A DNA stretch of 64,000 nucleotides from Klebsormidium nitens (GCA_000708835.1 DF237044.1:124001-188000); one strand, 5' to 3'. Shown: positions 8,311 through 58,951, numbered from the stretch's first letter. Notes: generated from the sequence alone by a model not told the origin. A program made the numbers and translations.

Positions 8311-11300
8311 ATGGCTACCGCTGGGGGTCAATTGTGTCGGCCCCCACCCGCTGTGCAACTCAATCGCTGGCGAGGAATCAACAATGAGGACGCGCTTTGC
8401 ATTGTCAACAGTTCAAGCTCTTGCAAGCTTCGCACTTCGCACGAGAGCATTCGCTGCAGCACTATATCTTGCGCCCAAAGCAGAGCCATACTGAACTCAA
8501 GGCTTTCACTTTCTTATTCCAGATTCTTGTTGACTGATGCTAGACCATTTGAAAAGCGTTCCAGGGAAGACCAAGGTTTCCAAAAATCACGGAGGCGCCA
8601 TTTGCACGTCTGTGCCACATATGGGGGGCGCAGTGGCAGCAGGGGCTTTGAGAGGGCGTCCTATACCTCATCGCAAGAAGAGGAATCATACCAGGACGAG
8701 CGTGAACGGTGGCAAGGGGCAGGGTCTACCTCCGATGGCGAAAGTGGTCACAGCAACGAGGAGCGGGGGTACTCGGAGGATTTTAGGGAGCGCAGGTTCC
8801 AGAATGGTAATGAAGCATACTCCGGTCAGCAGCAGAGAGAGGGCCGTGGTAATGGTCGCGGCGCACGGGGTGGAGCTACCTTCGCAAGCGGACGAGGCAT
8901 GTTTGCTGCCGATGGGAGTGGTGGTCGGTACAACGCCCCAGGCGCACGGTCAGGGAGTTTTGCCCCGGATAGTCGGGCGCAAGTTGAGCGGACTTCTGGC
9001 TGGCAGGCAAATTCTGGGGACGACGGTGTCAGTGATTACGTCAGCGATGATGATGGTGGAGTCCAGACGAGGTCATTTGAAAGGGGCCGCCCTAGGGTTC
9101 CGAAGGGGGGGATCCCCCCAGGTCTTCCTGGAGGCCCCCCGGAAGAACCGGGCGTCCCCTTCCGGCGCACGCTCCTGAAGAAGGAACTGTTCGAGAAGCA
9201 GGGAAAGCAATTGGCGGGGAACTTGGGGCTCGATGAGCGGGACTTGTACGGATGGAAGGCGAACGATTTGCGCAATTCTGACGCGTTGGATGAGGGGAAG
9301 CGTCCAGAGTTTCGCGACTTTTCGCAGCGCGACATTTTCCGGGACAGGATTCGGACAGCCCCCGAGCCTCGGCCCCCCCCTCAAAATCGATTCTCGTCGG
9401 AAGACAGGCCGTCCAAAACTGGGCCAAAAACGCCCTGGGTTAGGAACGGGGTCAGCTCGCCCCCTTCTGAAAGGCGATTCCAATCAGATTCTTCGCCATT
9501 TGACAGCCGCCCTGGAAGCCCCCAGTTTAGAAACAGGGTTAGCGCGCCCCCAAACTCCCGGCAAGGCGGTAGAGGCGCCTCTGGTCGGATGGCCCCCAGC
9601 GACTTCCAGAACCAGGCGGTTACGCCGTTCCAGAAACCCAAACCTCCCGGGTTAGACGTCGGCCCAACAATTGACAGCATCAAACCCCGGTTCGTGCCCC
9701 GAGAGGACCCACCCGACACTAACCACCTCGGATGGAAACCCGAAAACAACAGAGGTTATCGGCCCCCAAGAGAGACGAGATACAATGCAGCGGTAGAGTC
9801 GCCTCCGGTCTACCGCCCCCCGCAGGAACCGAATTTTGACAGGGGGGAGGATTTGCCCCAGGGAGGAGCCCCCCAGCAGTGGCTGAGGAGGCCGCCGGCC
9901 CCCCCGGTGTCGAGGTTTAGGCCGGTAGCGAGAGATGGGGAGATCCAGTTTGAGGAGGAGAAAGGGGGGAAGCAGAGACCGTCGGGATTGGAGCAAGAGG
10001 ACGACGGATTTTGGGACGAGGAGCACGGGGGGGAGGAGATCTCGTTTGCGAGGGCGGCCCTCAGTCACGAGTGAGTGGCACAAGTTTTGTTTACATTTTC
10101 TGGTTGCGCTGCAGCTTATTACCTTGCTCACTTTCTCAGGGTGATCTGCTCACACACTAGTTCTCTGAGGTGGTGAACAAGAGTCACCTTGCTTAGCTTC
10201 TGAGGTTGATATGCACAAACACTGCCACGAGACTGAAGACATGTTTGCAGGCTCTTCATTTAACAAAAGCTAAAAGCTAGTCGACAAATGCTACACGAAA
10301 CTCTGGCCCCATGAGATGGCAGTCTTAACGGAAGTGCACTGGGATAGGGAAAATATCCCTCCAGGAGGTTTAGTCATTCTTCGCCAAACGCCGCGTCTCG
10401 GCATTCGCCATCCTCGAGATAGAAGCTGGAAGCAGGCAAAGTCCGACAAAAAGTGTTCCGTGGTACACATTTACCCTATCCTCTCCTCACGCGTGTCCTA
10501 CTTTCAATGTGGAAGGTTTGGAGGAGGCACAACATAGCTGCAGGACTGTGAACATTGGTTGAAAGTTAGGTCCTTCTCCTTGTGGCATGACTTCTTCTCT
10601 CCTTCTTCCAGCCTTGAGGCGGAGGATCTGTGAGGAAGCCTAGTCACGTCGCAGGAAAATGAACAAGTCTTGCGAGTCAGATTCACCTCTTTCCTTCCTG
10701 ACGCTCGTCCTCTTCTCATTGGCCAGCCCTGAGGTCGAAGATTTGTCGAAGGCACAATTCGATGGATGTCCTCGTTATCTAGAGTCACATCTTCCTCTCC
10801 TTTGAAGTGTCCTCTCACGGCAACCCGAGATGAGGATCCGGAGGATGCACACATCCTGTCTTGCGATCTACGTTTTCTTTTTCGTATCTGACACGTTTCC
10901 TCTCTGAACTGCCAGCCTTGAGGTGGAAGATTTGGAGGAGGCGCAGTACCGGATGCAGGAGGAAGAGCGTGCAGAGAAGCTGCGGCGGCGGCGAGCGATG
11001 TATCGGGCAGAAATGATTCTGGAGGAAGCGGAGCTCAAGCGGCTGAGGAGGAACGCAATTCGACAGCGCTGGTTCCTCAAGATAGGTGAGCGAAGGTCTT
11101 CATCGGTGCCGCGGCGTCTGCAGTCCGATCGTTGGCATGACACCAGGGAATTCCCCATGAGATCCTCAATGAGTGAAACTGAAATCACGCGTCACAGGAT
11201 TTAAGGTTTAGGAGCAGAGCCTTCGATTAGCTGGACCTGCGGAAGCATGTACTCGCTTAGGGACCCGAGAGCTGGTGCAGTTTTGTATTGGCTCCTTCGT

Positions 11301-14300
11301 TTCCTGGTCACACTACAGCGATCCGCTACGTTTTCATCCGGGATGTGGTTCGACAAAGTCCTGAGCCCGCGTTTTCTCCGTGCAGGCAAGACGGGCGTGA
11401 CGAACACGGTCCTGGACGAGATTTACAAGGTGTGGGAGAACCTGGAGGTGGCCAAGCTGAAGGTGCGCGAGGATGCGCTCCACGGCCAGATGCGCGCGCT
11501 GCACAACACTCTCGAGGTTCGCACACCCCTACTCTCTCAGCCCTCATCTCTTTCCTCCTCGCACCTGCGCTTTGGTCTTCCTTCCTTGAGTCCGGACTTT
11601 ACATCAGGTAGTAACGCGCTGCATCCGCATAGCTCGGTAGCTGCGGGCTCTGCACAACTTGCTCAAGGTTCGCACACCTCTTTTCCTGACCCATTATCCG
11701 ACTATGCACCTCATTATCGCCATTTGTTCGGCCTTTTCGTCCAGACTTTCATCTGGTCTTGGTGAACTTTTTCCGAGCGACTTCGTCAGCGCAGGGCTGC
11801 CTCTGAAGCAGCGAGCTCCTAACCTGCAGCATATTGATCAGGTAGAAAGTCAGGAGAAGTATTGACGACAGTTTTAAGCTTTCGAGTCCAAATCATGCAT
11901 TACGTAGTCCATCTGAGCCTCAGCGTTAGACAAAGCCCGTCACTATGTTGCGATTTGCCTTCGAGTTGCCAAGATTGAAAGATTGATGGATGCGTATCCT
12001 CAATGATTCAAAATGCTGTGTAAGTTGGACAGAACTCTGATGGAAATTGGTTCCGCTTCCGCGCCCTTCTTGAAGAGTGATGGCTGGGTAACATCGCTTT
12101 CCCTTCCCTCAGAATGACAGTGGCCTCCTGTTGATCTTGCGGACGAGATAGCCATCCGTCTGCATTTTTTCTTGTGCAATCTCAATGAGGAATTGGAACT
12201 CAAATGGACATGGCCGTTGCGCTTTGCCATCGCTCCTCATGCTGACGTGGCGCCGCTCCTCATGCTGACGTCATCCGCTTCTCGCGCCGACATCATCGCT
12301 TCGTAGTCACAGGAGAAAACTGGCGGGCTGGTGATGCTGCGGACGGGCACCCTTATCCACCTGTAACGGGGACCGGACTACAAGGGCTCCCCGCCGTACC
12401 CGAAACCAACAAGCTGATGTCATACCGATATTATGCTGACGTCACGTTCCTTATGCAGGAGAAAACCGGCGGGCTGGTAATCCTGCGCACTGGCACTTTG
12501 ATCCACCTGTACCGGGGACCGGACTACAAGGGCCCCCCGCCACGATCCAAGATCAATGACATCACGGAAGCGATTGGCGACCAGGACTTGTTTGGAGAGA
12601 GCGACGACCTGGAGGAAGGAGACCTTATGACGCAGTTCGAGGTGGAAGATGGCATCAGTGAGTATCTTCCGCCGACTTTGAGTTCTTTCCGTTTACCATT
12701 GGATTGGGATCGGTGACAGCACGTGTCATGTGCTCTGCTCAATGACATTCCTTCAATTTTGGAAGCTCATGGACAGTGTGGGGATGTCTCAACCCACTGT
12801 TTGCCCAACCTCCGGCCTATTCTAGAAGTCGTTGTCTTTTCCAGCTTCGATCACTCTATTTTGCTTCACGACCTTTTGCCCATGTCGTGGCTTGCAACCT
12901 CGTATGTTATGTGACCTGAGCTAGTACTTTTGGATCTCGTCTACTCCACTTACTGTGTCATCTTCGGTCGCCCCCATCCTGCTGTGCAATCGGACTGAAG
13001 ACGTCTCCCGGTGTGTGTTTCACAGTGGCGCTCATGTCATCGTGTTAACGGCTTTGATGGGTTTCCTCAAATCCAAGTTATCTACCTTCTGCTGAGTTTT
13101 GAAGTATCTTCGATTTTGTTTTAAACTCTGTACTGCCTATTTCCGCTGGAACCCCCACCTGGAGCGGAGGTGGTGGCGGGTTCAAAGGACGTCGCTCCGG
13201 TCGCGCGCAAAGTGGCGCTCGTGTCATCGTTGATTTCCGCTTTACTATGTTTTGTCTAAGTTTTCAAGCATCCGCCGAAATCTAATGTACTTACCGTCCC
13301 TCTTTCCACTCTCGGTTGCCTCAGATCTTTGCTCTGCGGCTCCCAGTTTGCGCGCCATGTGGCGTCATTGCTTAAAGTAGTCCAGACGACATTCCAGAAA
13401 GACACATGCGGAAGGACATGTGGGAAGCCGAATTTTGAACCCGATCCTATCTTTTACCAGCCTCTGTTGCCCCCATTTTGCTCCGCGACCACACGGAGGA
13501 CGTTCCCCAATTTGCGCGCAATTGGCGGTCAGGTCATGATTCTCCGAAGCTTCTTTTACTCCTCTCAAAAAAACATGTTTGGTCCTGAACTCAAGCTACC
13601 CCTTTCTATCCTTCCAGCTTCGGTCGCTCCTATTCTGCTCCGCGACCACACGGAGGACGTCCCCCAGTTTGCGCGCAAGGTGGCGCTCATGTCGGGCGGC
13701 GAGAAGGGCGGCGTGCGCAAGCGCCTGACGGAAAAGCCCGTGCGATGGCTGCCTCCGGGGCAGACCGCCAAGCTGACCAACTTTGAGATGATGATGCTGC
13801 GGCGCAAGGGGAAGCGGATCAAGCCGGCGTTCGTGCTTGGTAAGCGGGTTGAATGAAAGATGCTTAGATTGGAAGGAAAGTTTAAGAGTGAGACAGATTT
13901 AGTTGCTGTTGTGTATCTTTTTAGTGGACTCAGTCGGTTGACCAAATTTGAGATGGCGATGCTGTGGCGCAAGGTGAAGCGAATGAAGCCGGCAATTGTG
14001 CTCGGTAAAGGACTGGTGCTTTGCAGAAGTTCTCGACTTTGGTGTTTTAGTAGGTCGGGAAGATGGATTTTGTTGCATATGCGATGATTTTGAGTACAAG
14101 CTGACCAACTTCGAGATGGTGATGCCGCGGTGTAAGGGGAAGCGGATCAAACCAGCGTTTGTGCTCGGTAAGGGGTTCACTAGGATGACGATTGTTGGCG
14201 GTTCAAAGTTTTAGGTAAAGAGTGAGTGCGTTGGATTCTTAGGGTGCAAGCTGGAATGAAGGGTTTGGTTCATCTTTCCTTTTAAGTTGCGGCAGCGTCC

Positions 14301-17300
14301 AGGTTCCCGGATTGCCGGATTGGTGGGAATGACAATCCGAGTGCTCGAAGATGACCTGAACTTTCAAATGTGCAGAGTTTCGAACTTAAGTATATTTGCG
14401 TGTATGGTTCATTATGAGACGGTCACACGACTTGCACCTCGCTCTGACAGTATTTCATTGAACGTCTGCGGAAATCGTTGAACATCTGCGGGAATCGCGT
14501 CTGATTGCAAACACCTCGCTCCTTTTGTCCTTCGCTTGTGCAGGCTGGTTCGAAATATCTCCACCTTCGTGCACAGAAGTAAATCTGAGGAGTCTGCTCA
14601 GCTTTGCCTATGCTGCTCTGTGCCCATAAGCGCTGTCTATTTTGCTCCCTTATTTTCTTCTACCCCCCGCTTATGCAGGCCAGCAGCGGCGCTTCGACGG
14701 CCTGGCTGCGGCGATCATGGAGTACTGGGAGCGCAACGAGATAGTCAAGATCAGCTGCCGCGCGGTGATCAACGCTAACCTTGAGAGGACGGCCAAGGCC
14801 ATTCAGGTGAGGTCGTTGTGGTCTGAATACATTGGGTGATTTCAATCAGACTCTTCTGCAGTGTCAGATTCTGCTTTGGATTTGAAGTTTTCGTTTTCAG
14901 TTTTCCCGTCAGGTTTTGCCCAGGCAAGTTTAAAACCTTCTGCGGCCGCCCCTTGAGGACTGTTTTGTGATGAGCTATCAAGAATTGACGTTTCGCTCAA
15001 GTTGAAGTCAGAAGGCTTTTTCAGCAACAGTGGCGGAAAGTGTTCTTTGCTTCCTCCTCCAAGACTGTCTGGCGGCTTCTTCTTGTTACATCTTTATGTG
15101 TTGCAGCGAAAACTGGGCATCCGTTTACACGTCCACTTTGGCATCCCTCTTCTTTATGACGTCCTCGAAAGGGGGTGTTATCCTCCTCTTTTACCGCGAT
15201 CAACAGTGAATGTTTAGACAGCCTCTTTTTCTTTAACAGCCTCTGTTTAAACATTCACTTTTGCAGGCTTCCAATCCCGTTTGTTCACATCCTTGATTTT
15301 GGATTTAAGAACCTTCGCATCCACTATGCAGGACATCATCGGGGGGGTCCTTCTCGTCAAAGAAGGCGGTCTCATTCTTTTTACTGTCGCGAAGACTACA
15401 CCAGCGTTCGCTTTCACGTGCCCATCTTCGGCCGTCAATCAGAATACCTAAATTTTGGCACAATTACAATGCAGGACCTCATCGGGGGAGTTCTGCTCGT
15501 CAAAGAGGGCGGCCTCATCTCCATCTACCGCGGCAAAGACTACCTCCCCCTCCGTATCGGCGAGGCCCTACGCCGCTACCAGCAGCGCATGATCGCCGAG
15601 AAAGCCGCCGAGCGGGAACAAGAGTCCGCGGCACTCGAAATTTCGGACGGTGAAACAGTGCCGATGGAAGCGCCGAGCGCGACGTGGGTTGCGGAAGCCG
15701 GCGTTTCCGAGCGGGAGTTTGAGGAGGAGCTGGCGGAAGACGAAAAGGTCGCGAGGGAAGAGCTGAAAGTGGCTGGGGAGGTGGAATCTCTAGAGGTTCC
15801 GGGCGGTTCGGAGGGAGTTGCGAGCGTTTTGGACGCTGTGGAGAGTGGTTCGGACGCCGAGAAGGCGGAGGTTAGCGACGGGGTTAGGGCGTCCGTTAGC
15901 GGAACCAGTTCGGAGGGGGTATCGCCTCTGTTGGAAAAGGTGTTGTCGGCTGAGGAGGGTTTGGTAAGCAGCTCCGGACGGTCCGAATCTGAGGCAGCGT
16001 CCGGAGCGAACGAGACTGTGAAACGGTTGAGGGCGTTGTTGGACGCGACTTCCGGCGAGAGCGCTGCCGATTCGGCCACCGGCGAGTCGGTCGACAACGA
16101 AGAGGAAAACGATGCGGATGCTGTGTCGGACGGTACAGGAGCAGATGCGGACGCTGCAAAGCTGATTTCGGACGCTGCGAGCTCAGTCTTGGACGCTGCC
16201 ATTCAAGATTCGGACGGTGCATTTCTGGATTCGGACGCCACGAGCGCGGATTCGGACGGTGTGAACAAGCCCGCGCCCAAGCTGGTGAAGGATCTGGTGG
16301 TTCTCGACGACGAAGTCCCGCAGGCGCGGATCGATCAGATGCTCGAGGCAGTCGCGGCGTATCGGCGGCGGGACGTCGAGACGCTGACGCCCGAGGAGCG
16401 CGCGGCGCTGCGCAAGAAGGGGCTCGGCGAGCGGCGCTTCCTGCAAGTCGGTGAGTGTTGTCCTTGACATTACGGTGTGTCACTGTTTGTTTGTGTGCCG
16501 GCCCCTTGCTGCACAGTGTGTTGCCCATGTAGAGGCGAGGTTTCCAATAACGCATGGAAATGTGTCAAGCTCATGAGTGTCTGATGCTCGGTCCTGCATA
16601 AAGTTGCTTCTTGAAACCTCAGTCTGCTTCCTACATTCGACCATCCTTCCATTATTGTCTGCAGCTGCCATGCTTGAATGATTTTTCTTTTTGTCGTGGA
16701 TCGTCCATCTTGTACTCGGCTTGACTAGTACTGCTTTGGTCCGCACAGGCTGCTTTCTTACAAGAAAGGATACACACGAATGAAGTCACTTTATCTGCGC
16801 ACCTCCTCTAGTGAAGTACCGTTCTTTCGTCCTCCGTTTCCTTCAAGCCCCAAGCGCTCCTTCTTTTTTACCTGCAGGGCGGCGTGGCGTGTTTTCTGGG
16901 ACGATCCAGAACATCCATCTACACTGGAAGCGCCACGAGCTGTGCAAGGTTAAGTGCACCGGAATCCGGCCGGAGATCGTGCCCATTGTTGCGGAACAGC
17001 TTGCGGTGAGTTGTCTACCTCGTCTTCCAAGAATATCTTTCTTGGCATTCCAATATGGAGGACGGATTCGGAAGGTTGAAAGTTGTTTCGTCAGGTTGAT
17101 GAAGGATGCGTCAGGCCCTGTGCTTTTCAGCACCGTGTAGGGACGTTTGTTTGTCTATCATGGAATGGACTTTCCTACCCTCGCGATGATTCTGACGCAC
17201 GATTGACCGCATCTTTGAAGCCAGGAAGTCGGACGTAGTGATAAAAGCTTGCGGGTGCGGCCAATCCGGAGAAGTAAAAACTTTCTTGGGGCTGTGCATT

Positions 17301-20300
17301 ATTTGTTGTTCAGCACGATCTTTTCGTTGCGCTCTGTCATAGACACCCTTTTCGATTCCCAGGCCCAACGGCCTTGTTTCTAGGTTGAGAGCGGCGGCGC
17401 GCTCTTAGTTTTCCAAGGGGGAGTGTTTATTCTGGTTCATGCTTTAAAGTCTCACACTGTGCGTAAGACGTTTCTTCCAGTGCACATGAAAACCGAATTC
17501 CAAACCCCATCTACCCTTAATCATATCCCCAACCAACGTAAGCGGTCTTCTTATATATCGAGAGCGGCGGCGTTCTCGTTAATCACGTGGGAACGACGAT
17601 TCTGCCTTCGTTGTGGCAAGAAGTACATCGCACCCGGAATCTATCGTCTCCCGTCCACATGCTAATCACACTGTGAACCACTCGACTTTTGAAACCCAGT
17701 TTTGCAAATTCACTGCAAGCTTTATTGTGGCAGGTCGAGAGCGGCGGCGTTCTCGTTGATCACGTGTGCACGACGGTCCTGCTCTATCGCGGCAAGAACT
17801 ACTTTGCCCCGGATATCATCGTCCCTGTCCACATGCTAATCAACCTCAAATCCATCCCTTTTGGAAGCTGAAGTCTGTTTCTGTTAATTCAACACAAAAC
17901 GTTCTGTTGTAGGTGGAATGCGGGGGTGTGCTAGTAGACTACGTAGGGACGACAATCCTGCTCTCTACCGTGGCAAGAACCACATCGCCCCGAAACGATC
18001 TGTCTCTTTATGTGCTGATCAAATCCTGAATATTTTCAACCCTTGTAGATCTGATTTTGCAGTTTCAAAACAAACGGTGTTTCATTGTAGGTAGAGAGCG
18101 GGGGCGCGCTGGTACACTATGGGGCACCACGATTCTGCTCTACCGCGGCAAGAACTACGAGACAATCGTCCCCGTCCACACGCTGAACAGTTTTCAACCC
18201 CCTCGAACGAGCTTTAAACCTGATGAATCCGAAAACCTTGTTCGTAGGTTGAGAGCGGGGGCGTGCTGGTAGACTACGTAGGGACGACGATCCTGCTGTA
18301 CCGCGGCAAGAACTACATCGCCCCCGAGACGATCGTCCCCGTCCACATGCTGAACAAGCAGGAGGCGTTGCGGCGCGCCAAAGCGGAGCAGCGCGCGCAG
18401 TCGCTGCTAGACCTGGAGATTCAGCGACAGGAGGAGCTGGCGAAACAGCGGAAACGCCTCGAGTACAGCCTTAAGGTATTGACTATTTGACCTAGCACGG
18501 TTGATGGGGTTGTTGCTTGAAAGAAGCGTGCTAGAAGAACTAGATTCGTAGGAGCATTCTTTAATGGGCTACCGCCTGACCAGATTAGAAGGGCAGCACC
18601 TGATTGTTAATGCAGTTGCTGGTTTTCTCTCTGACTTACTTCTCCGAAAAAGTTAGAACGGTCTGTGTCTTCTAGTGTCAAGGGTTAACTTCGATGGAAC
18701 GGAACGCCATCGAGCCTTCGCGAGCACTTGCCCCTGAGCTTTTTGCTGTGAGGCCTTTCAGCTGTTGAGAGACTGACCACTTATGTAACCCAAAGTTGAA
18801 TTTGAACTTTTGAGCGTACACGAGGAATTGGTCCAAGCTGGGTGTTTCTGAACCTGGGAAGTGCATGTGCTTGGTTTCGCTTACATATGAGCAGTGGCAT
18901 CGCAGATCGACGGGCATCCAGACCTTATGATTAGTTGTGCTGCGACACTTACCGAGTCCCCTATCGTCACCGCTTTCGCGTCAAGACGCCCTTCTGTCAA
19001 AGCTCTCGCCCTTTGCTGAACTCGTTGCTGCTGCCAAAAGTACTTCCCTGTGACGTCACTTCGGTCTCCTCTGCTGACGTCACACCCTCTGGCGCGCAGC
19101 TGGAGCAGGCGGCCGAGGCCCCCAAGAAGAAGAAGCAGGAATACCCGCTGGCGCCCGGCGTGCGCGAGTATGTCGTTATCCCTGAAGCGGTGGAACTCAA
19201 CACCACCGTCGAAATGGAGCTCCGGAAACAGGTGGGCAGCCAAATCATTTCAAAAATCTATGCAATATACATTCTTGGATGCCCTGCGGTGCGCGAGTAT
19301 GTTGTGATTCCTGAAGCAGTGGAACTAAACACCACCGTAGAAATGGAGCTGCGGAAACAGGTGAGCCCGCGAAAGGATTCCTGGACTTGTATCCCTGGAC
19401 TATATCTGAATTCGCTAGATCTTCAAGCATATGATTGTGAGCAAGTAGGTTGTATCCCCGAAGAACACCACCGTAGAAGTGGGAGCTTCGAAAACAGGTG
19501 AGCAGGCGGTCTGGATAACAGCTGGGGACTGGGCATTGTCAACTTTCTAAAGTTTTGGGGGTTTGTGAGTTTGTGGTGAACCTTGAGACGGTGGAATGGA
19601 TTATAACCATAGGAATGAAGCTTCGCAAACAGGTGCGTCAGGAAAGAGCTCAAGAAACCGGAAGATTCCACTCTTGCAAATCACTGGAGTGCGCGCATTT
19701 GGGGAAGTTTTGCAGGCGGTGACATTGAATTCTTTCGGATGCTCCTTTTATCGACTCAGAAGGTGGTCATCCGGAAACGGGGCGGGCAAACGAGGATGAT
19801 TTTGAGAAAACTTGAAGGTTGAAGGACCCAGATGGGCAAGTTTTCACAGATGACGTGTATGGGTCTTTCGAACTTACAACTCTCACGTCTGACATCCGTC
19901 CGTCCTTTCCGTTCCGTTTGCAGGGTCCGCTCATCCCGAAGGAGCACAACCAGCCGGATCTCCCGGCCTTCTGGCGCGCACCGGACATGTCCCCCCTGCA
20001 GAAGCAGAAGATTGCCCGGATGTCCAAGCAGGAGCGCACCAACGCCTTCCTCGTCGGTGAGTGATGTCATGTTGACGTCATCCCTAAGCCTCTGCCTGTG
20101 TCCGAGCTCGTTACACCTGATCGACGAGTAGCTGCTTAAAAACAGTTGGTTGTTGTTTGCTCCTAGTCCGTGCCATCCTTACAAGCAATTGCTGTCGTTC
20201 TGTGCTCAAATACGAGCTTTTCAAAGAATGCGCGAGTGTGGAATTTCATTTGGGGTCTCCCGTCTTCAATGTTCCTTGCTTTCCTTTCATGTTGCGTTTC

Positions 20301-28457: not shown

Positions 28458-37347
<8,890 letters not shown>

Positions 37348-45670: not shown

Positions 45671-48600
45671 CTAGTATTTAATGGGTCCTTTCAGGTTGCC
45701 TTCCGCAAACTGCAGAGAACCAGCGTACACGTCAGTTCTGACACCCCAAAATCACGATGTCCAATAACAATCGAAGCGTGCTGAAGTAACATCCTGGCGG
45801 CAAATTACTCGGATGTAAAAGTAGAAAACTAGAACCCTTATGCAGATCATTAGAAGCGGCTGTCAAATCACGTATTTCGATTGGCTAGCAAGTTCCGACG
45901 ACAAGTTTCAGGCGGTCAGTATGAGGGAGCGACGGCGACTACTGAAATGGCCAGCAAATAAACACAGAACTTGCGATGGACGCAAACCACTTTCTATCAC
46001 GGGAAAGAATGCTCTGAAATGTGAAGCCAAGGACAAAATAGTGGTATGTTCCAGGACCGGAAAAGACGCATACAGCTCGTTTTGGCGGTGCCTGCGGCGC
46101 TTACCTGTCTGACGATTGGCTCTTGCGAGGTGTCGAACTCCGAAGTGGTCCCCTCCCAAACGACCCTGCCTTCGTGGAGGAAAAGCAGCCTGGCAGACAG
46201 ACCAAGCAAAGTGATTTCGGGTTGTCAGGTAATCATAGTTTACGGACCACAAAACGGGATTGAACCCAAGGCACATGCGCGCTTGGAGTAAGACCTGTTG
46301 CTCGAACCCCGCTTTTGCTCGAACCCCACTCCCCGCAAAAAAGAACTTAATCAAAAGGTACAGAGCCCCGTAAGCTCTGAGAAAGTTCTTCTAACTTGCA
46401 GCGCGGACTTTTGTGTTTGCAGTCGAACTCTTGAAAAAACGTGGCGACGAGGAGGACAACTCACAACGATTTTCCTTTAGCTGCCTAGGAGCCTTCAAAG
46501 GTCCGTTCAAAAGCCTTGTAGAACCCTGCTTTTGCCACTCAACTTGGAGTGAGCCTCACAGACAGAGCTTTCAGTTGTTTCGTTTCCTGCATGTTTTTGC
46601 CACGTACAACAATGGTCGTAACAGTTACCTCGTTAAGAATGAAGTCGGTAGCACTGCCTGGCAAAGCAACAACAACAATCAGCTTCCTTCTTCCACAAAG
46701 TCTCTGCCCATCCTTACTTTTCCACACCTGTTTCAACCCTCGTCCCTTTCCGCTTCCCTCCATCGTCGCGTTTCTCGCAATCGTTCTCTGATAATTAAAC
46801 CTCTAGCTCGCAAAATCGTTGACACGCAATCGTCTTTCAGGCTTCGACTCTAACCCGCGTCATTTTTCGTGACCCACCTGTCAACCGTTCGACCCTAACC
46901 CGCGTCAGTTTCCGTGTGACCCTCCTGTCAACCGTTCGACTCTAACCCGCGTCGGTTTCCGTGACCCACCTGTCAACCGCGCGCCGGATCGTGCTGTGCT
47001 GGTGAGTCACCACGATGTAGCTCGCGATCGTTCCGGGCTCTTTCGTCGCCGGATTGATGCTCTTCACGTGCAGCGACCGGATCAAATCTTCCACGACCGT
47101 CGATGCGATCGGGTCCAATCCGGCCGTCGGTTCGTCGTACATGACCACCTCCCGGTCGTCCGATGAGCGCTCCTCCTGGGCGTCCGAGATGATGGCACGT
47201 GCCAGCGCCACGCGCTTCTTCATCCCGCCGGACAGCTCGCTCGGAAGCCGCTGCTCGACGTTCTGCAGAGGGGAAGGTCTGAAGATATGAAACCTGTTAT
47301 TGAAAACAAATCGAGGGTCTTGTAGTCCGGGCCTTGCAATCGCGGCTTGAGGATTTGGAGCTGACAACCTGAGAGTTCGTACGGATGGCTTCCTGAGTTG
47401 TGGGGTGTTGACATCAGGAACTTCCGAAGACAGGACGTCGGACTCGGCCGAAGCGTCTGGCAGACGGACGAAGAAACATCATCAGGAAGCTTCCGCTTTC
47501 AGGGGCATATATTCGCGACTCTGCAAAACAAAGACAGATCGGCCTTCTTGACCGTGTGATGCCCCCTGCTCCTAATAATGTACCAAAACGATATGTTTCC
47601 GAGTCGTCAAAAAGGACAATCGATTGAGCAGATTCGACCAGTTGCGAAATTGTTTGATCGATCCAACTCTGAATTCCGAATGAGCCGAGATATGCCCCCG
47701 AGCGGTCGTTTGACCCTCACAAGCTGCCGTTGGGGTGTCCGGAATTGAATCGAATTAAATTGGATTGAGTTGAATCCTAGTGCTGTCAAACGCTTATGAA
47801 ACCGATGCGACAAATCACTTTCCGAACGGAAAGCAGGTGATGTAGCTTTCGGTGATGTAGCTTTCCAGGGGAAAAGAATTACTTGATTTCTGGAATCATA
47901 TCATTTCCGAACAGTACTTCGCGAGCAGCTGTTCAGTAGCACCTGACAAATGTGACCTGACAAAAGGCAGCAACACAAATCTTTTTTTCTGTTGATCAAT
48001 CGTGTAATCAGTCGATAGCTCAAAGGTGATCTGAGAAGGGCGCTGAGTGACTCCCAACGCTCAGAAGAGTTGCAGAGCTCAAACTCGTGAATTCCATCAT
48101 GGAGGAAGAGAAGGGCGACAGCGACTTACATAAAGCCCCACTTGCATCAAGCTCTCAGTCACTCGCCTCTTTATCTCGTCCTCTGGAATATCGGAGTGCT
48201 CGTACCTGCGCAAAATCAGAGCAACAGCCAGACGACTCAAAGAAGCACACTGCATTCTTACGTTCTCTTTTCTTGGCGGTAGAAAGAACGGCGTCGGTTG
48301 AGACTAATAAGCAGCATACAAGAAAAGCTCAGGCTTGCCGATCAGATTGGAAATACCGGCTTCGAGGCACACTGGTTCATAAATCCTGATTGGAAAAGCA
48401 GTCGTCCTCGCAAATAAGTGAAATATGCACTGAGCCTGCACCACCGCACAAGGGGAACCCATGTTTTTTCCGCGGAGTGAGAAACTCACAGCATGAACCC
48501 CACGTTCTCTTGCACAGTGAGTGAATCGAACAGCGCCGCACTCTGGAACACCTGTAGCAGAGAGAAACGACGCGTCTGAGCTGATGCCGTCATGCTGATC

Positions 48601-50420: not shown

Positions 50421-50517
50421 CTATTACTATTAGTATCATCCTATTACAATTAGTATCATCCTATTACTATTTTTATAGGATGATCTATTAGTATCATCCT
50501 ATTACTATTAGGATCAT
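50421..50517. repeat. AT-rich 20-bp tandem repeat with one inverted sub-unit
   Basis: ctattac(t/a)attagtatcatc units; atcatcctat (50455-50464) is the reverse complement of ataggatgat (50475-50484). Confidence 0.8.
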
Positions 50518-50812: not shown

Positions 50813-53800
50813 ATGCTCGCCTGCTCTCTGCCAAACGCATTGGCACACAGGTGTTCCGCCTTCAGCGGTAGCAGCAAAACAGGCAAAATTCTGATCAGAA
50901 CCGCTCCTCACGCTACCACATTGCAGGCACCGCTCTGCAAAATCCACTCTTCTAGTGCAGCAAACGCTCTTTGCAAAGCGACCACCATTTTGGGTTTGCC
51001 GCTGAGATCCTGTGCTAACTTAGCAAGTAGCCCTAGCTTCAGGTATCGCTCTGCCTTTTCTGCGCAAATCGAAACCCTCTGTCCTGTTGAAACCGGCGGG
51101 TTAGCTTCCAAACCTCAGGGTTTCGTGTCCAAATCAGTTGGAAGTCCATCTGAAATGGCCTCCAAGCGAAAGGCCCCCTCGCGCGGCGCAGAGGGTGCGG
51201 ACGTCAAAGAACTCCTCGAGAAAGCTGTCAAGAAGGGCAAAAATGCAGCTGGAAAAGCCGTAGAGTCGACAGCGGGCGCCGTGAAAGACGCGGCGGGGGG
51301 CGCCGCGAAAGCGGTCAAGAAGGCCACCGAGAAAGTGGCGGAGGTGCCAAAAGCAGCTGCGAAAGCTGTCTTACCGTCCAGCGCAAAGGACGAAGGAGCG
51401 GGGCCTTCGTCGAAGACACCTCCGCTGTCGAGATTACCCGCTGACCTCAACAAGTTGGTTGACCCGAAGCGGGTTATGACGCTACGGGAGGGAGAAGTCA
51501 CGGGGACTGGGCCTGTGTTGTATTGGATGTCAAGAGACCAGCGGTCAGCGGACAACTGGGCTCTGTTATATGCAATCGAGCAAGCGCACAAGCAGGGTTC
51601 GTCGGTCGCGGTTATCTTTAACCTGGTCCCAAGATTCCTGCACGCGGGAGCACGGCATTTCGGGTTTATGCTGAGGGGGCTGCGGGTTATGGAGAAGAAC
51701 CTGAAAGAGAAGGACATTCCGTTCTTCATTGTCCAGGTGAGACTGGTAGATATTGAGTCCTTCTATGCAGGCACCCCCTGCTTTTACAAGCAGACAAGCA
51801 GATTGTGTCATGGCCTCCTTGTTGTTTCTCACCGATTGCCAACTTGAAACAGGGCACAGAGCTCACCCTTTGTTACCATGACGTTTGCACACACACTTGT
51901 TGGTTGATTGCCTCATTAGTACTGAAACTCAGGCGTATCCTCACGGCATCGCCAGAAGAAGCCTTCGCAAGACCGGACCTCAGAGAAGAGAAATAAACAG
52001 GTACATGTGAGAGTTTCTTATTCCATTCTGTAAAGAGCTACACCTCACTGGCCCGCTTGTCAAGACCACTGTTTTCAACTCTCTCCCCACTCTGCCTGGA
52101 ATCGTCATCGGCTCCGACCTCTATAAGCAATTGAAACGTCCTCACTTGATTAAACCCTTCATTCTGATGATGATTCCTCTTTCGATAGGGAGAGCCCGTT
52201 GACACTATTGTCCAGTTCGTTGCCAAAGTGGGCACCTCGCTCCTAGTTACCGACTTCTCGCCTCTCCGGATCGCGCGGGAATGGAAGGGGGGTGTGTGCA
52301 GCTTGGTAAACATCCCCGTGCACCAAGTGGATGCGCACAACGTGGTGCCCACGTGGGTGTGTTCGGACAAGCAAGAGTGAGTGATGAAAGCTGTCCGAAC
52401 TCGTCAATCTCGGACTGCGGCATGGAAGAATGTTGAGGTCGTTCCAGGGAGTGTTGCGACCGAGTCTGAGGGCGTATGCTCCTGGAAATAAGTTGGATTC
52501 CGAGAGTTCTGGCAACCCATGCGGACTCTTTTCAAATAGGGTGGCTACGTGTATATTTGAAGGTTTGTCCGAAACTATGTCTTGGGAGTGTCAAAGGTTC
52601 CTTCAAGTGCGTCCATTGACGTACTTGTGCTTCAGGGCTGTCTCCAACCAATTCTGTTGCTGCAAATCGTTGAAAACGTATTAAGGGACCATTTCCTTGC
52701 AGGTAAGATGCGTGTACGACGTAGGATTCCATACCAAGATGCACCACCAATTGCCGGAGTTCCTGGTAGAATACGCCCATTTAACTTTCCAACAACCCCA
52801 ACAAGGGGAAACTCGAGCTGCCTTCTTATATCATTTCGAGCGTTCGATTTTTTTGGGTACAGTGCGCGTACAATCTGGACCAAGGTCCACCGCAACCTGC
52901 CAGAGTTTTCGGTATAGTATTCCGGATTTATCATTCAAGCCGGATTTATCATTCAAGCCCAACAAACGAACCCTCGAGCCGCCCGCTTGTAACAATTCAG
53001 CGCCCACATTTTGTCGGTATGGTGCGTGAACAATCCGGACCAAGGTCCACCGCAACCTTCCCGAGTTTCTGGTAGAGTACCCCGACTTTACCAAATAACC
53101 CCAACAAACAAACCCTTTAGCCGCCCGCTTATATCGTTTCGGGCGCCCAAATGTCGCAGGTACGGTGCCCGCACAATCCGGAACAAGGTCCACCGCAACC
53201 GCCTAGCAGAGTACCCCGGGTTTACCAAATAACCCCAACAAAGGAGACACTCGAGCCGCCCACTTATAACGATTCGAGCGTCCGACTTTCGTAGGTACGG
53301 TGCGCGAACCATCCGGACCAAGGTCCACCGCAACCTGCCGGAGTTCCTAGTAGAGTATCCCGAGCTGCCTTCCAACCCCAACAAGTGGGCTCTCGAGCCG
53401 CCCGCGCCGATCGACTGGGAGGCGTTGCTGAAGATCGTCCTGTCCAACAAGGCGGTACGTCAGGATCTTAAGACGGTTATTGCAATGGTCACTTGCGCAG
53501 AAATCCAGGGTCAGGCGAAAAGTAGCGGAGGGGGCGGCCTGCGTTTCTGTTATTCTCCAGATGTTTGTGCCTTCACGTGACTTGCTGTTTGTGCTTTGTC
53601 CAGTGGCGGAAAAGTGATGAATTGCAAGCCAAGACAAGGAAAAGATCCCGTCGTGCAGCACAAGGTGGTTCTATCTTGCGCTTGTGTTGCTGCCCGGCAT
53701 CTTGACTCTTGCGCGTGTGTTGCTGCCCGGCATCTTGACACGACGTTTTGTTATACACGACAACATTAACGAGCCCACAACATCCGAGATTTGGTGGTAG

Positions 53801-56800
53801 GACCCGTGTCTGTTTTCTAGTAAACCCGTTGGCACGTATGGTAGCAAACTCAATCTACGGTCAATGAGTTCCTCCAAGGGTGGAGGCGTACTTGTTTTAA
53901 AAGTGTTCCTTTTCCACGTCCTCTCTGTAAAAGGAAGTCGAGCCAATACTTTTGCATTTGCGTTGTAGTTTCCCGTCGAAGGCGTCCAGAAACCGTAGTC
54001 ACGGATATGCTTTGTCAGGCCGAATCGTTGCGACTTCCACCGTTCAGTCTCCATTTGTCTCCGCCCCCCGTTCTTATAAGCAGCGGCCGGACATCGACTG
54101 GGCGTTTTCAAGGAAGACGCTGGCATGGAGCGACTCCTGAAGGGCTTCCTCGACGACCAACTACTTTCTTTCATCATATATTCCCTTGCTTCTTATATAA
54201 GCGGGCGCTGGAGATCAACTGGGCGATACCGGGGAGGACGCCGGCATGGAGTGGCTCCTGAAGCTCTATATCGTTGGATTTATCCTGAATTTTCTTTATA
54301 TTTTTCTTTCCGCTTGTCAAATCTCATAATTCGAATATATCCCCTTCCTCTTATCGTAAGCAGGTGCCAAAGATTGACTGGGCAATACGCGGGGAGGACG
54401 CCGGGATGGAGAGGCTCCTGAAGCTCTATTTCATTGCAATTCTCCTGGATTTCCTCTTTTTCTCCGCTTGTCCAATTTCTTAATTCAAATATCCCTTTTT
54501 CTTTCATCATAAGCAGGTGCCAGAGATCGACTGGGCGGTGCGCGGAGAAGATGCCGGCATGGAGTGGCTCCTCAAATCCATTCTCGTTGGATTTTTTTAG
54601 TATTTCTTCCGCTTGTCAATATCAAGAATCCGAATACATCCTTTCCCCTTTTGTTATAAGCAGGTGCCGGAGATTGACTGGGCGGTGCCTGGAGAGGACG
54701 CCGGGATGGAGTGGCTCCTAAAGCGCTTCCTCGGAAAAGGGATTGCCAAATACGACGCTGACCGGAACGACCCGACGATCCCCACCGGAGTCTCAGGGAT
54801 GTCCCCTTACTTGCACTACGGCAACGTCGCGGCGCAGGCAAGCAACCGCAGATGCCGAGATCAAAGTCCCCTTTACGTTTGTTTGACTTCATCTTTTTAC
54901 TGTTGCCGTTCAACCTAGTCGGCGTCGTATGTTGAGTACCTCTTGGTATTTTGTGTCGATGGAGTGCGTGTCTGCTTCGGCTTTGGTTTGGTTTCTGACT
55001 GCCTTCCATGGATCAGAGATCTGTTGAGATTCGAGTTTGAAAAACCGATGAAGTTAAAGAATAGATTTCGATACTTTCGGTGTAAACAGGCTTCGATACG
55101 ATTTGTAGGAACGGGCACTCGCAATACGCTTGTTCCTCAGTATTACTCGCTTCTTCCAATCCTCACTTCAGGGTTGACACCTTGATAGCAGAGAAGTGCG
55201 TCAACTTTTGTATGTGGGAGAGCACACAGAATTTCTTTATTTTCCTTCTAACTACCGGCATCTTCAGTCCCCAATGCACATCAGAAACTCAAACATCGAT
55301 ATAGACTGGGGTGCGGGACTCTCAACAGTAGAGAGAGCTCTCCTTTTTTTTCCTTTCTCGACCTTTTTCAGATCTTGCACAAGTCTCAGACCTTGTTCAC
55401 TCCAGGAGTTTGCATTCTTCAAGAACTCCCAAAGATGGAAAGTCGACGAGTCCGCAAGACGGGCCATTGCACTTAACCAGATCTGAACAGCGGCGGGGTT
55501 CATCGCTTGCGTTAAGAAAAAGAATTTCTCCTAGCAAAGTAGGCAGCAATCCTTTCCAGGGCTGTTTTACAGGTCCACGCGACTTGCCCAGAGGACGTTG
55601 CTTTGTGTATTATTAGTCTGTGATATTTTCCTGTGTTATTGATTAACGGTTATCAATCTGTTAACAATCTGCTTGATTTGTGCAGCGAGCGGCACTCGAG
55701 GCGCGCAAGTACCGTAAGAGCCACCCGAAGGCGGTGGACGCTTTCCTGGAGGAGCTGATCGTTCGACGGGAGCTGTCGGACAACTACTGCTACTACCAGC
55801 CCAACTACGACAACGTGAGCCGCCGGAATCTTCCAGCTTATGTTCCATGACCGTTCCCCATCACTTGGAGTTCAATACATCCAAGCTCCGCGGTTGTGAT
55901 CCGTGAGTTTGCGATAGGGAAGACGGGGAGCAGTCCCTTTGCTTTATCAGCTAATCGACAACGACAAATGATGCGCTCCGACTCTTGCCACCTATAAAGC
56001 TCCTACTTAACCCCACCTTTTCTTCTGGCCATAACCTTCTGCTGCCTTGATCTGGCCCAACGGAAGTTAGGTATACTCACGTCACCCTCCCTCTCCAGAT
56101 CTGCAAAACCGCGTCTCTGCGCCAAGGGGGACGCTGTAGAATTGTTTTGGAGCGACTTGACGTCTTTGCACAAGTACGCCGATGACTCCATGCTGACGTC
56201 ACCCCATTTTCTCGCATTCGCAAGGCGCGTTCATCTGTGCGCAGGAGATACTTCAGGTTCCCGAACTGAATCATGTTACATGACTTCAAAAGTCCGCTGA
56301 TGGAGCTACGCTGACGCCACCCTGTCTCCTCGCAGCTGCTCGGTTCGTTCTTGTGGGAGGGGAAGTCGCTGCAAAGAGCTCGCCGAGCAGATTGCACCCA
56401 GAACACTGTATGACGTCAGCGCAGACGTCGGGTTTGCCTGCGCCACCATGCTGACGTCACTCTGTATTATCGCAGCTGTGATGCGCGTTCCCATGGGCGC
56501 AGGAGCCAACCCGGAGAATTCGTGGAAGCAGATGTTTCGGGGAACCACGTGACGTCATTGCAGGCGTCTGCCGCTGATATGTTGACGTCACCCTGTTTCC
56601 CCGCAGCTGCAAGGCGCGTTCCTGTAGGCGCGGGAGAAGCTGCAGGGGCTCTGCAGAGCGTAGTGAACGTGACGTCATTTCAGCTGTCCGCCGATGGAAG
56701 TATGCTGACGTCTCTCCATCTTCTCGAAGCTTGCATTCGACAGCACCACGCTGACGTCACCTCGTCTCCCCGCAGCTGCAAGGCGCGTTCCCGTGGGCGC

Positions 56801-58951
56801 GCGAGTCGCTGCAGAAGCACGCGGCCGACCCGCGCGAGTACGTGTACACCAAGGAGCAACTAGAGAAGGGGCAGACGTACGACGAGCTGTGGAACGCGAG
56901 CCAGCACGAGATGGTGCACCATGGCAAGATGCACGGCTTCATGCGGTGAGGGTAGGACGTACTTTTGCCGCTTGTGATTCTTTGATTATACTATGGATGT
57001 ACGTCCCATTTGAGAAGTACACGCAAAATAGCACCGGCAAGATGCACGGATTCATGCGGTGGGGCGATAGGGATTTGTTGATTCCACTCCGGAAGTGCGT
57101 TCCACTCGGAAAGTATACGCAGGGTAGCCACGATGAGTCACGACAGGATGCACGATTGTATGCGGTGAGGGCAGACGCTGCGATTGTGCGTGTTTGAGTT
57201 CGAGTCAAGAAGTATGCGCACAATTAGCGACATTCACCATGGCGAGATGCATGGTGAGAACTGTGATGTTTGGGATCGAAGATTCGGCTTGTAGCAAACG
57301 TGTGCATTGCTGACGACGTTTAACGCCTTGTTTATCATGTGGAAAAGGGCTAACTTAAGAAAGCAGCTCGAATCCCCCGCACAGCAACACAACTCTGTGC
57401 TTCACAGCCAGATTCGGCATGTATGCAAAGACACGTAGTTGCCGCAAGCTACACACTAAATATTCTGAGGCTTGAAGCGATCCGGGGTGTGTTTTGAAAC
57501 CCTAGTTCACGTCGCACAGAGACTAGTACAGTTTAATTCAAGGTTACAACGCCCTGCAATGGACCAGGACCACTTCGAAGCGACGAAGCTCAATTTTGCA
57601 CCCGGCCCCTTGAACCGGGCTCCTTGCTGACTTCGGTCTGACGTCAGCTTCTTCCCCCTTGCAGGATGTACTGGGCGAAGAAGATTCTGGAGTGGACTCC
57701 ATCCCCCGAAGAAGCCCTGGCGATCGCTATCGAGCTCAACGACAAGGTTTGTAGTCCTGTTTTGTGCACTGATTGGTGACGGAGACGTGTCTGCCAGTGA
57801 TTTCTGACTTTCTGCTTGTTCTGATCTCTTCTGCTTCCTGGTTGTGAGAAACTACTTAGACTGGCAGCGTTTCTTTCTCTTCGGACCTTTTGAACTCCTC
57901 ACAAGAGCCCCTAGGTTAAAATACGCCGTTTGGAAAGAGTGAGAGTTCATGAATTAAGGGCAGAGAAGACCTTCGCACCGCATTCTTCGCAAGGTCATTT
58001 GAAGCCGCGAAAATTGAACTGGAGAGTTCTTGCGATGCGTGCAGTACCAGATCGACGGCCGAGATCCCAACGGTTATGTCGGCTGCATGTGGTCCATTGC
58101 GGGGCTCCATGACCGGGTTAGTGAACCCCGTCCTAATCCATTTATTTCCGGCCCGGTTTTCTCAGTTTTCTTTCCACTTTTCTTTGCAGTACGAGATTGA
58201 CGGCCGGGACCCGAATGGGTACGTCGGCTGCATGTGGGCGATCGCCGGTGTCCACGACCAGGTGAGGTCAGCAGTGACGTCACGTGTGCCTTGCTTGAGC
58301 TTTTGACACAAGGCACGTACCAGGCGCGGTGAGGTTCCGCGTCGACCAAAAGCTGCTTGGCTCGCCAGCTTCGCATCTCCGGTCCGCGTACAGCTTTGTA
58401 CAGTACCGCTGCGGCTAAAATCTGTACTCGGTCTGTACTTTTGATATTACGTGATCGATTGAAGCGTTCTCATTGGTTCTGACGACCGGAGATGAGCGCT
58501 CAGCCCATTCCGGTCAACGCGGAACTCAGGGTGTAAGCTCAGAAAGGTTCCGCAGCTGTTGGACTGTGGTCGGATGGAGCGCTTCTGCGATACAACAGCT
58601 TTTGGATTTTGAACGATACGCGAAGCTCTTGCACGCAGGTCCGACCAATATAAGAGTGTCGAACCGATTGAGAACCACGCCCCTTGTTACCGAAGGACTT
58701 GCCGAACCACGGACGAAACTTGATTGATATCTGGATGGACTCTTGAATCCAAGTTCGAAGCCAAACTTCATATTTCGTGTTTGTAGGGCTGGGGCGAGCG
58801 GCCAATCTTCGGCAAGATTCGGTACATGAACTACGCGGGGTGCAAGCGCAAGTTCAAGGTCGACAAATACGTGGCTTACGTCAACAAGCTGATGTCAGAC
58901 TTGAAGACGAAGGGGAAGAGCTCTGCAGCGCGCGAGAAGAAGCCCGTCTAG
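50813..58951 (+). CDS. PHR1: Class II CPD photolyase, 687 aa from the first ATG
   Basis: Exons 50813-51736, 52189-52376, 53295-53454, 54664-54837, 55686-55814, 56776-56945, 57665-57746, 58190-58261, 58787-58951. Motifs [110 protein letters not shown]. Confidence 0.96.
52714..53261 (+). repeat. Four intronic copies of the photolyase exon-3 5' portion
   Basis: Starts at about 52714, 52857, 53017 and 53160 (core ACCAAGGTCCACCGCAAC). Live exon at 53295. Confidence 0.92.
54073..54585 (+). repeat. Four intronic copies of the photolyase exon-4 acceptor and first ~22 codons
   Basis: taagc(a/g)g| starts at 54084, 54205, 54364 and 54517. Live exon at 54664. Confidence 0.92.
56080..56645 (+). repeat. 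Five intronic copies of the photolyase exon-6 branch site, acceptor and 5' edge
   Basis: Starts at about 56099, 56218, 56336, 56476 and 56607, each preceded by a (g)ctgacgtcac-like motif. Live exon at 56776. Confidence 0.88.
57030..57257 (+). repeat. Three intronic copies of the photolyase exon-6 3' edge and donor
   Basis: ATGCG|GTG ends at 57058 and 57164, and CACCATGGCGAGATGCATG|GTGAG ends near 57252. The live donor follows 56945. Confidence 0.82.
58045..58116 (+). other. Complete duplicate of photolyase exon 8 with both splice sites (candidate mutually exclusive exon)
   Basis: gcag|[24 protein letters not shown]|gttagt, 72 nt, phase 0/0, no stop. The live exon is 58190-58261. Confidence 0.8.

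Follow-up and report, generated by a model that had tools for sequence, protein, structure and literature searches.

Introns of four genes in a 64-kb stretch of the Klebsormidium nitens genome (strain NIES-2285, GCA_000708835.1, DF237044.1:124001-188000; hereafter the window, with positions counted from its first nucleotide) contain tandem arrays of degenerate copies of their own splice junctions. We refer to one direct copy of an adjacent exon-intron junction as a rung and to an array of rungs as a ladder. Sixteen such tracts were counted: eight in the multi-CRM-domain gene CFM2, two in an aldo-keto reductase gene (AKR), one in a TGD3-like ABC ATPase gene and five in a class II cyclobutane pyrimidine dimer (CPD) photolyase gene. 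Of the total length of the 12 introns verified with RNA, 44% consists of ladders, and in single introns the share reaches 73%. The explanation that we consider probable as a whole is that these are junction-spanning tandem arrays whose rungs would be neutral relics, and whose confinement to junctions would reflect retention there.

Results

Ladders are direct, local repeats that end in the functional splice junction

Splice joints were obtained by mapping RNA-library contigs on two 6-kb stretches and adjusting the joints to GT..AG cuts. The 12 introns verified in this way all lie in CFM2 and the photolyase gene; the exon maps of AKR and of the 5' part of CFM2 are approximate. A BLAST comparison of the window with itself revealed that all internal similarity takes the form of near-diagonal direct repeats with offsets of 118-191 bp or multiples of these, the sole off-pattern offset being 1071 bp, and no inverted or dispersed repeats were found in this self-comparison. 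When each junction was locally aligned with the intron to which it belongs, rungs were detected in nine of the 12 verified introns, with one to five rungs in each, at scores of 20-99 compared to shuffled maxima of 11-17. The orientation is always that of the gene, with acceptor ladders upstream of the exon and donor ladders downstream of it. In all nine verified ladders the terminal unit is the functional junction, as it coincides with the RNA joint. The period is 106-191 bp (mean 148, standard deviation 20.5, n=34), and the TGD3 array, at 47 bp, stands apart.

An earlier note, made from the sequence alone, had described at least 14 tracts in these genes, copied in gene orientation from the immediately adjacent exon and filling much of the intron length; the count, the self-BLAST and junction alignments and the intron share bear this out. 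Its label PHR1 holds in so far as the gene is a photolyase, of the class II CPD type, and not in the sense of the MYB factor. TGD3, which it listed among the ladder genes, does have a junction array, but only the short 47-bp donor array.

The novel joint is common to all units of a ladder, so that the units share their breakpoints. Across ladders, the exon part of the unit is 28-111 nt and the intron part 31-99 nt, with a more constant total length, and the junction lies between 25% and 78% of the way along the unit. A fixed geometry with the junction at the unit centre was dropped because breakpoint mapping gave these variable exon and intron parts. No splice-like or other motif was found at the unit breakpoints, and profile hidden Markov model searches found no older, more decayed rungs in the remaining intron sequence. 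Short duplications of 15-33 bp are present away from junctions.

Individual ladders illustrate the range. The five-rung CFM2 ladder at 17364..18247, with a period of 157-179 bp, is built of units of 110 nt of exon head and ~68 nt of intron tail and occupies 71% of its intron, and the photolyase intron 2 ladder (111 nt of exon head, ~31 nt of intron tail) occupies 67%; AG is kept only in the nearest rung of the latter. The CFM2 donor ladder at 13840..14247 has periods of 165 and 163 bp and a copied exon part of about 71 nt. In photolyase intron 5, the exon part of the rungs is about 40 nt and fully decayed, with a ratio of nonsynonymous to synonymous differences (pN/pS) near 1. The TGD3 unit consists of 10 nt of exon end plus the donor, and its middle copy has GT changed to GA.

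Independent assemblies and related lineages reproduce the ladders

The interval 13700-18411, which includes three ladders, is matched without a single difference by an 18.9-kb Logan contig from a DNA run that was released in 2017. RNA libraries of 2022 and 2024 gave low-depth contigs that are collinear across several rungs, also without differences, at a depth of 2-9 compared to 144-225 on exons. The ladder at 17364..18247 is matched by unspliced RNA contigs with 0 differences, and RNA-library contigs likewise reproduce the photolyase ladders. Three independently assembled contigs of related Klebsormidium lineages have ladders at the same junctions. The alternative that the assembly stacked diverged haplotypes or strains in tandem could appeal to the synonymous bias of rung divergence described below, which superficially resembles that of allelic or homeologous variants, and to run X18, in which identical and ~10%-diverged transcripts occur together. 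Against it stand the 2017 contig across three ladders, the RNA-library contigs across several rung boundaries and the contigs of the three relatives. Since these independent DNA and RNA assemblies and related-lineage contigs reproduce the ladders, haplotype stacking is excluded, and we regard the probability of such an artefact as negligible.

Run X18 (13700-19699) is labelled as DNA and assigned to another organism, yet it yields spliced contigs and, for the same CFM2 exons, contains versions identical to K. nitens alongside others that are ~10% diverged. A mixed culture, a hybrid or cross-contamination could account for this. When compared by hand, K. nitens rungs had no systematic match to the states of the diverged X18 orthologue.

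Rungs decay evenly while the live exon changes at synonymous positions

Divergence between rungs and the live exon is 13.8%, 9.7% and 32.6% at codon positions 1, 2 and 3, respectively, with a pooled pN/pS of 0.25, and divergence between rungs is also biased to third positions. The changes were polarised using outgroups, namely the related species L002 for photolyase introns 2-3, and the metagenome contig L003 with L004-L006 for the CFM2 ladder. In the CFM2 ladder of three species, the changes at codon positions 1:2:3 were 39:29:31 (plus 11 probable) on the rung lineages compared to 0:0:29 (plus 22 probable) on the live exon. In photolyase intron 2 of K. nitens, the corresponding counts were 22:18:25 and 4:0:17. 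Live exon heads compared between species had 0 nonsynonymous and 9-16 third-position changes in 36-37 codons. Since the polarised rung-lineage changes are even across codon positions, the rungs decay regardless of codons. They are neutral relics, and their appearance of synonymous recoding is the live exon's own evolution.

Three other sources of the third-position bias were considered. After base-class normalisation, a GC-to-AT or CpG mutation bias accounts for no more than part of it. In-situ coding selection on the rungs and capture of the rungs from diverged functional alleles were both dropped because outgroup polarisation places the bias on the live-exon lineage. The live edges form one continuous functional lineage, without nonsynonymous change, and the rungs change evenly, which leaves the exon renewal proposed in the earlier note unsupported.

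Rung splice signals are often preserved and are not seen as joints in RNA contigs

AG is kept in 13 of 20 rung acceptors and GT in all seven long-period rung donors. The pyrimidine tracts of rungs are almost as good as those of real acceptors (pyrimidine fraction 0.63 vs 0.70). At many acceptors, and likewise in their rungs, the motif CTGAC, frequently as GCTGACGTCA or CTGACACGTG, lies 25-40 nt upstream of AG; it is probably the branch-site consensus, and it overlaps ACGT-core palindromes. In photolyase intron 5, most rungs keep a CTGAC-type branch-site-like motif together with the pyrimidine tract. Only true sites appear as joints in the contigs of six runs from several studies (five RNA runs and X18 with its spliced contigs), and no rung joint was found at this contig level, at which low-level or rare use could be missed.

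Most rungs contain stops or frameshifts, and about half of the nearest rungs have clear lesions. The partner splice site is absent from most rungs, as the units hold 10-111 nt of one exon edge, the exception being the whole-exon copy at 58045-58116 in the photolyase gene. Read-through is open and in frame for only one of 27 rungs, the others meeting stops in the intron-derived part, and translation of rungs by read-through or alternative sites was rejected on this ground. Of the lesions that the sequence had originally suggested, stops and frameshifts are indeed common, but disabled splice sites amount to seven of 20 AG, none of the seven long-period GT and the one GT>GA change in TGD3. At recursive splice sites, which serve stepwise intron removal, AG and GT are juxtaposed. 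Rungs read AG/GT in three ladders whose copied exons begin with GT; such exon starts occur at three of six laddered and none of five unladdered acceptors, a difference that is not significant.

Ladders are shared between species and differ in rung number

Rung-specific changes increase with distance from the live junction, from 5-6 through 11 and 11-14 to 13-14 in the CFM2 ladder, and from 14 and 13 to 16 and 22 in photolyase intron 2. This supports the view, drawn from the sequences, that new rungs arise next to the live junction and that the older ones lie farther out, as the earlier note had it. Comparison of orthologous introns revealed ladders at the same junctions with different numbers of rungs. 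Three rung pairs are orthologous between L003 and L004, and L003 has one extra unit directly beside the live exon relative to L004. Photolyase intron 2 has four rungs in K. nitens and two in L002, and the breakpoint is the same in both. Intron 3 of K. nitens, with four rungs, measures 1209 nt; its L002 orthologue measures ~690 nt, and no rung was detected in it. The TGD3 array has three units in K. nitens and one in L002, and L003 has a donor ladder after a CFM2 exon where K. nitens has none. Overall, orthologous introns differ in length between species by roughly whole rungs. Since some rungs are shared, rung numbers differ and L003 has an extra unit, the arrays are old and long-lived and are still gaining and losing units.

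In the CFM2 orthologue of L003, an acceptor ladder at 1175-1868 consists of five units with a 130-bp period and 85% identity, and it is both younger and more regular than its K. nitens counterpart, which occupies the same junction. All units at this junction carry synonymous states specific to their species group, and the breakpoint lies at +110 in K. nitens compared to +103 and +75 in L003/L004. These differing breakpoints and states suggest turnover, or independent events, at the same junction, and the breakpoints hint at recurrence at preferred sites.

As a small control, orthologous photolyase loci of 23-26 kb each were scanned in three green-lineage genomes. Two arrays were found in Marchantia, one in Chlamydomonas reinhardtii and none in Coccomyxa; the same method gave 14 in the 64-kb K. 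nitens window and six clusters in 20 kb of L003. None of the arrays in these three control loci lies inside the photolyase gene, which has five in K. nitens. On approximate mapping, photolyase intron positions after residues ~197, 310, 495 and 519 are apparently common to Marchantia, and two of these introns carry ladders. Because at least four intron positions thus appear to be shared, two of them laddered, the ladders appear to lengthen pre-existing introns, rather than to represent the intron gain invoked in the earlier note.

Gene setting and other features of the window

The positions of genes, exons, arrays and CTGAC sites are listed in Table 1. Pfam scans of long open reading frames (ORFs) were useful only for placing the photolyase, ABC and ankyrin genes. 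Photolyase intron 4 (54838-55685) is a GC-AG intron (GCAAGC...TGCAG) that is backed by four RNA runs. The TGD3-like ABC ATPase and photolyase genes are arranged head-to-head (45671-58951), and an ABC_tran gene and a photolyase gene are likewise head-to-head in Marchantia polymorpha (L007, 5667-13921); the pair looks like conserved microsynteny across streptophytes.

Table 1. Positions of genes, exons, junction arrays and CTGAC sites in the window
Feature	Position	Strand	Details and evidence
CFM2, multi-CRM-domain gene	about 8.2-22 kb	+	
AKR, aldo-keto reductase	about 28.4-37.5 kb	-	
TGD3-like ABC ATPase	45671-50004	-	
Class II CPD photolyase	51155-58951	+	573 residues
CFM2 true exons	..-13839, 14679-14806, 15475-16450, 16878-17005, 18248-18475, 19100-19231, 19925-..	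+	RNA-contig joints
Photolyase true exons	..-52376, 53295-53454, 54664-54837, 55686-55814, 56776-56945, 57665-57746, 58190-58261, 58788-..	+	RNA-contig joints
CFM2 acceptor ladder before exon ~10913	10509..10960	+	At least 2-3 rungs; offsets 191, 305, 414; exon placed by L003 conservation, no RNA
CFM2 donor rung after exon ending ~11518	11488..11757	+	Offset 151; exon placed by L003 conservation
CFM2 acceptor rung 12310-12395, 146 bp upstream of exon ~12459	12261..12541	+	TAA stop; 88% identity repeat family D17, ORF listing
CFM2 acceptor ladder before exon ~13610	12958..13693	+	About 4 rungs, period ~157-190; repeat family D11, self-matches
CFM2 donor ladder	13840..14247	+	2 rungs, donors 14004 and 14167, both GT; RNA joint 13839>14679
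CFM2 acceptor rung, 143 bp before exon 15475	15323..15474	+	Acceptor 15332, AG intact, 1-nt frameshift; RNA-verified junction
CFM2 acceptor ladder	17364..18247	+	5 rungs: 17384, 17557 (AG>AT), 17734, 17913, 18091; RNA joint 17005>18248
CFM2 donor ladder	19232..19699	+	3 rungs, donors 19360, 19497, 19632, all GT; RNA joints, alignment
AKR acceptor ladder, exon starts 29362	29363..29700	-	2 rungs, near 29517 (AG intact) and 29646; repeat families D10, D20; offsets 155, 281; no RNA
AKR acceptor rung 35218-35315, upstream in gene sense of exon ~35125	35126..35330	-	Offset 170, 72% identity, ORFs
TGD3-like donor array	46843..46979	-	Three 45-47-bp units; TRF, sequence, L002 comparison
Photolyase intron 2 acceptor ladder	52684..53294	+	4 rungs: 52711, 52857, 53017, 53160; RNA-verified junction, alignment
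Photolyase intron 3 acceptor ladder	54042..54663	+	4 rungs: 54084, 54205 (AG>GG), 54364, 54517; period 121-159; RNA-verified junction
Photolyase intron 5 acceptor ladder	56072..56775	+	5 rungs: 56101, 56218, 56336, 56476, 56607; RNA-verified junction
Photolyase intron 6 donor ladder	56946..57174	+	2 short rungs, donors 57058 and 57164, ~28 nt exon copied; alignment
Photolyase exon 8 complete copy 58045-58116	58040..58189	+	RNA-verified live exon 58190-58261
CTGAC sites	19070-19099, 56745-56775, 57630-57664	+	
CTGAC site	29380-29400	-	

Three further features of the window were noted. The 1071-bp offset of the self-comparison belongs to a ~190-bp direct repeat (33126-33317 and 34197-34389, 66% identity) in a ~5.5-kb AKR intron; it is the only non-ladder repeat that the self-comparison found in the window, and it is unlike AKR coding sequence. 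A degenerate 21-bp tandem repeat at 16143-16238 encodes an acidic low-complexity region in the large CFM2 coding exon and has no relation to the ladders. In the CFM2 intron 18476-19099, a stretch of ~120 bp (18486-18605) has a DNA k-mer depth of 1300-2580 compared to about 18 in its flanks and interrupts the DNA contigs, and it probably represents a dispersed element present in many copies, for example a miniature inverted-repeat transposable element (MITE).

Discussion

Proposed origin and retention of the ladders

The proposed history would begin with a short segmental duplication (106-191 bp, mean 148) across the splice junction of an existing intron, and the outcome would be a minisatellite-like tandem array at that junction. 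The terminal unit, continuous with the rest of the exon, would stay functional under purifying selection, and the other units would become non-functional pseudo-junctions that undergo neutral decay. Unit number would then rise and fall, with unequal exchange or replication slippage as the probable cause, and new units would adjoin the live junction, so that age would increase outward. The copies may be tolerated because a partial exon copy has one splice site and no partner and would therefore not be defined as an exon; aberrant products would carry premature stops. Collapse of a lesioned rung onto the live unit would damage the gene, which may lock arrays in at junctions, whereas arrays in unconstrained DNA would be free to collapse. 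The net effect would be passive intron lengthening across Klebsormidium.

Several observations weigh against this account. At third positions the live exon changes about 1.4 times as fast as the rungs, where a ratio of 1 or less was expected; base composition (a GC content of 0.85 at third codon positions) accounts for part of the excess. The spread of ladders is uneven, CFM2 and the photolyase gene being ladder-rich and several neighbouring genes having none, and RNA data at contig level leave room for low-level use of rung splice sites. In addition, two copies look intact. The photolyase copy at 58045-58116 is a whole exon of 72 nt with an open frame and intact AG and GT, separated from live exon 8 (58190-58261) by a 73-nt spacer; 20 of its 24 residues are identical to those of the live exon and 12 of the 15 differences fall on third codon positions. 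At contig level, assembled mRNA from four studies does not include this copy. The first CFM2 donor rung (19280-19360) would give an in-frame, stop-free extension of 129 nt (43 codons), with all 24 compared residues identical and seven differences in 24 codons, all synonymous; this extension was not seen in the RNA contigs. These two copies, together with the concentration of rung-versus-live divergence at third positions (pN/pS 0.25) and the intact state of 13/20 acceptors and 7/7 donors, speak for the alternative that rungs are functional alternative exon parts kept by coding selection, whether as mutually exclusive exons, alternative 3' or 5' sites or gene-conversion cassettes. However, the third-position bias is traced to the live exon and the rung lineages change evenly, most rungs have stops or frameshifts, and all but one of the possible read-throughs are stopped in the intron-derived part. 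Most rungs are also partial exons with no partner splice site, and none of the six runs contains a rung joint. For ladders as a class, functional rungs are thus largely refuted and in our judgement very improbable; the copy at 58045-58116 by itself is a fair candidate for a mutually exclusive exon.

The confinement of arrays to junctions also needs to be weighed against the account of neutral relics retained there. In an expectation model that used the ladder-free lengths of the 12 verified introns and random 150-bp duplications with at least 25 nt on each side of the junction, about 37% of tolerated duplications would span a junction and the rest would be purely intronic. In contrast, nine of nine verified ladders contact the junction, as do 25 of 25 arrays when the other arrays of the window and those of L003 are included. 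Non-coding repeat pairs of the same age would be detectable, since the intron tails of two photolyase ladders are ~79% identical, and the junction exclusivity is real. No tandem array of 60-450 bp was found in those parts of 41-64 kb that are known to be intergenic, in the 12 verified introns outside the ladders, or in the TGD3 gene, whose only array is the 47-bp one at a junction. These results favour the alternative that mutation itself is targeted, with breaks or replication errors focused at the splice junctions of transcribed genes and about one nucleosome length around the junction duplicated repeatedly; R-loops, spliceosome-coupled pausing, pyrimidine-tract structures and nucleosome- or Okazaki-sized re-copying are conceivable agents. 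The narrow, nucleosome-like unit length (148 +/- 20 bp) leans the same way, as do the different breakpoints at the same junction across lineages, which imply recurrence, and the same genes are ladder-rich in two species. On the other hand, the position of the junction within the unit varies from 25% to 78%, which is what random placement would produce, and no breakpoint motif was seen; both lean to retention. Any break or targeting agent is hypothetical, a retention bias can mimic the pattern, and the sample is small, with approximate exon maps outside the verified stretches. We therefore regard targeted mutation as possible but rather unlikely, and retention as the better supported of the two: the junction restriction more likely reflects a retention effect than a dedicated mechanism. 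Of the recurrent, exon-anchored process put forward in the earlier note, the recurrence and the constant use of the adjacent exon edge stand; the exclusivity could arise by selective retention as well as by a special mechanism.

Relation to known systems

A literature search found no prior description in Klebsormidium, nor a genome-wide one elsewhere, and gave only single-gene analogues; the view that the process is unrecognised for this lineage therefore holds. The closest analogue is intron 7 (IVS7) of the human F7 gene, which contains a 37-bp variable number of tandem repeats (VNTR) minisatellite that begins with a unit lying across the boundary of exon 7 and the intron (PMC1557585). As in Klebsormidium, its repeats are head-to-tail and anchored on the functional donor, and the downstream pseudo-donors are normally unused. 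The ladders share with it direct repeats within the intron, a functional terminal unit, pseudo-sites unused in the main transcript and copy-number variation, here between species (4 vs 2 rungs in photolyase intron 2, 3 vs 1 units in TGD3, and the extra unit of L003). F7 IVS7 differs in that it is one locus, with nearly identical copies of a 37-bp unit, whereas Klebsormidium has many arrays, at donors and acceptors, with ~150-bp units that include 28-111 nt of exon, show deep divergence and persist across species.

Tandem exon duplication and clusters of mutually exclusive exons (PMC9013439, PMC6071210, PMC5740500) likewise involve local, same-orientation copies of exon and flanking intron, and the copy at 58045-58116 fits this description. 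Mutually exclusive exons, however, are whole exons with both splice sites that are transcribed and under coding selection, whereas rungs are mostly partial, with one site, and neutral; purifying selection and transcript inclusion were not found for rungs, and only 58045-58116 is a whole exon. In the Rogers model, introns are created by tandem genomic duplication across AGGT (PMC3265369, PMC4974935). Both processes entail short tandem duplication of splice signals that is made harmless by splicing, but in that model an exon segment is duplicated and a new intron made, whereas here an existing intron is lengthened: the units contain non-coding intron tails, and the intron positions match those of Marchantia on approximate mapping. 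Introners or transposon-borne introns are dispersed mobile copies inserted in many genes (PMC9860276). They resemble the ladders as a lineage-specific process that reshapes introns; in contrast, every ladder copy comes from the neighbouring exon edge, with no dispersed similarity in 64 kb. As for the seed, fill-in at staggered DNA breaks is reported to produce small tandem duplications whose length equals the stagger (PMC8355091). Such fill-in is a plausible route to the seed duplication. The duplications in that study are reportedly smaller and have no link to junctions. Several aspects of the ladders are new: the scale, with many arrays per gene, the ~150-bp unit, the occurrence at donors as well as acceptors, and a persistence across species that is accompanied by turnover.

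Implications

Intron length evolution is usually ascribed to transposons and to random insertions and deletions. In some genes of this streptophyte alga, about half of the intron length consists of copies of the genes' own splice junctions, and the process has been active in several Klebsormidium lineages. The ladders form a natural experiment in splice-site choice, in which up to five decoy acceptors, most with a pyrimidine tract and some with a branch-site-like motif, are ignored. Together with outgroups, the rungs serve as internal fossils for polarising and roughly dating substitutions in the live exon, and the ladders allow the question whether tandem duplications of ~150 bp form preferentially at junctions to be tested cleanly. 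They can also mislead gene prediction and read mapping in a reference genome for studies of plant terrestrialisation. Tentatively, a duplication process that is focused on junctions and linked to transcription, splicing or replication may operate in Klebsormidium, repeatedly re-copying about one nucleosome length around splice sites. If so, this process would be the main engine of intron growth in the lineage, instead of transposons or random insertions, and each intron would hold a dated fossil series of past exon sequences.

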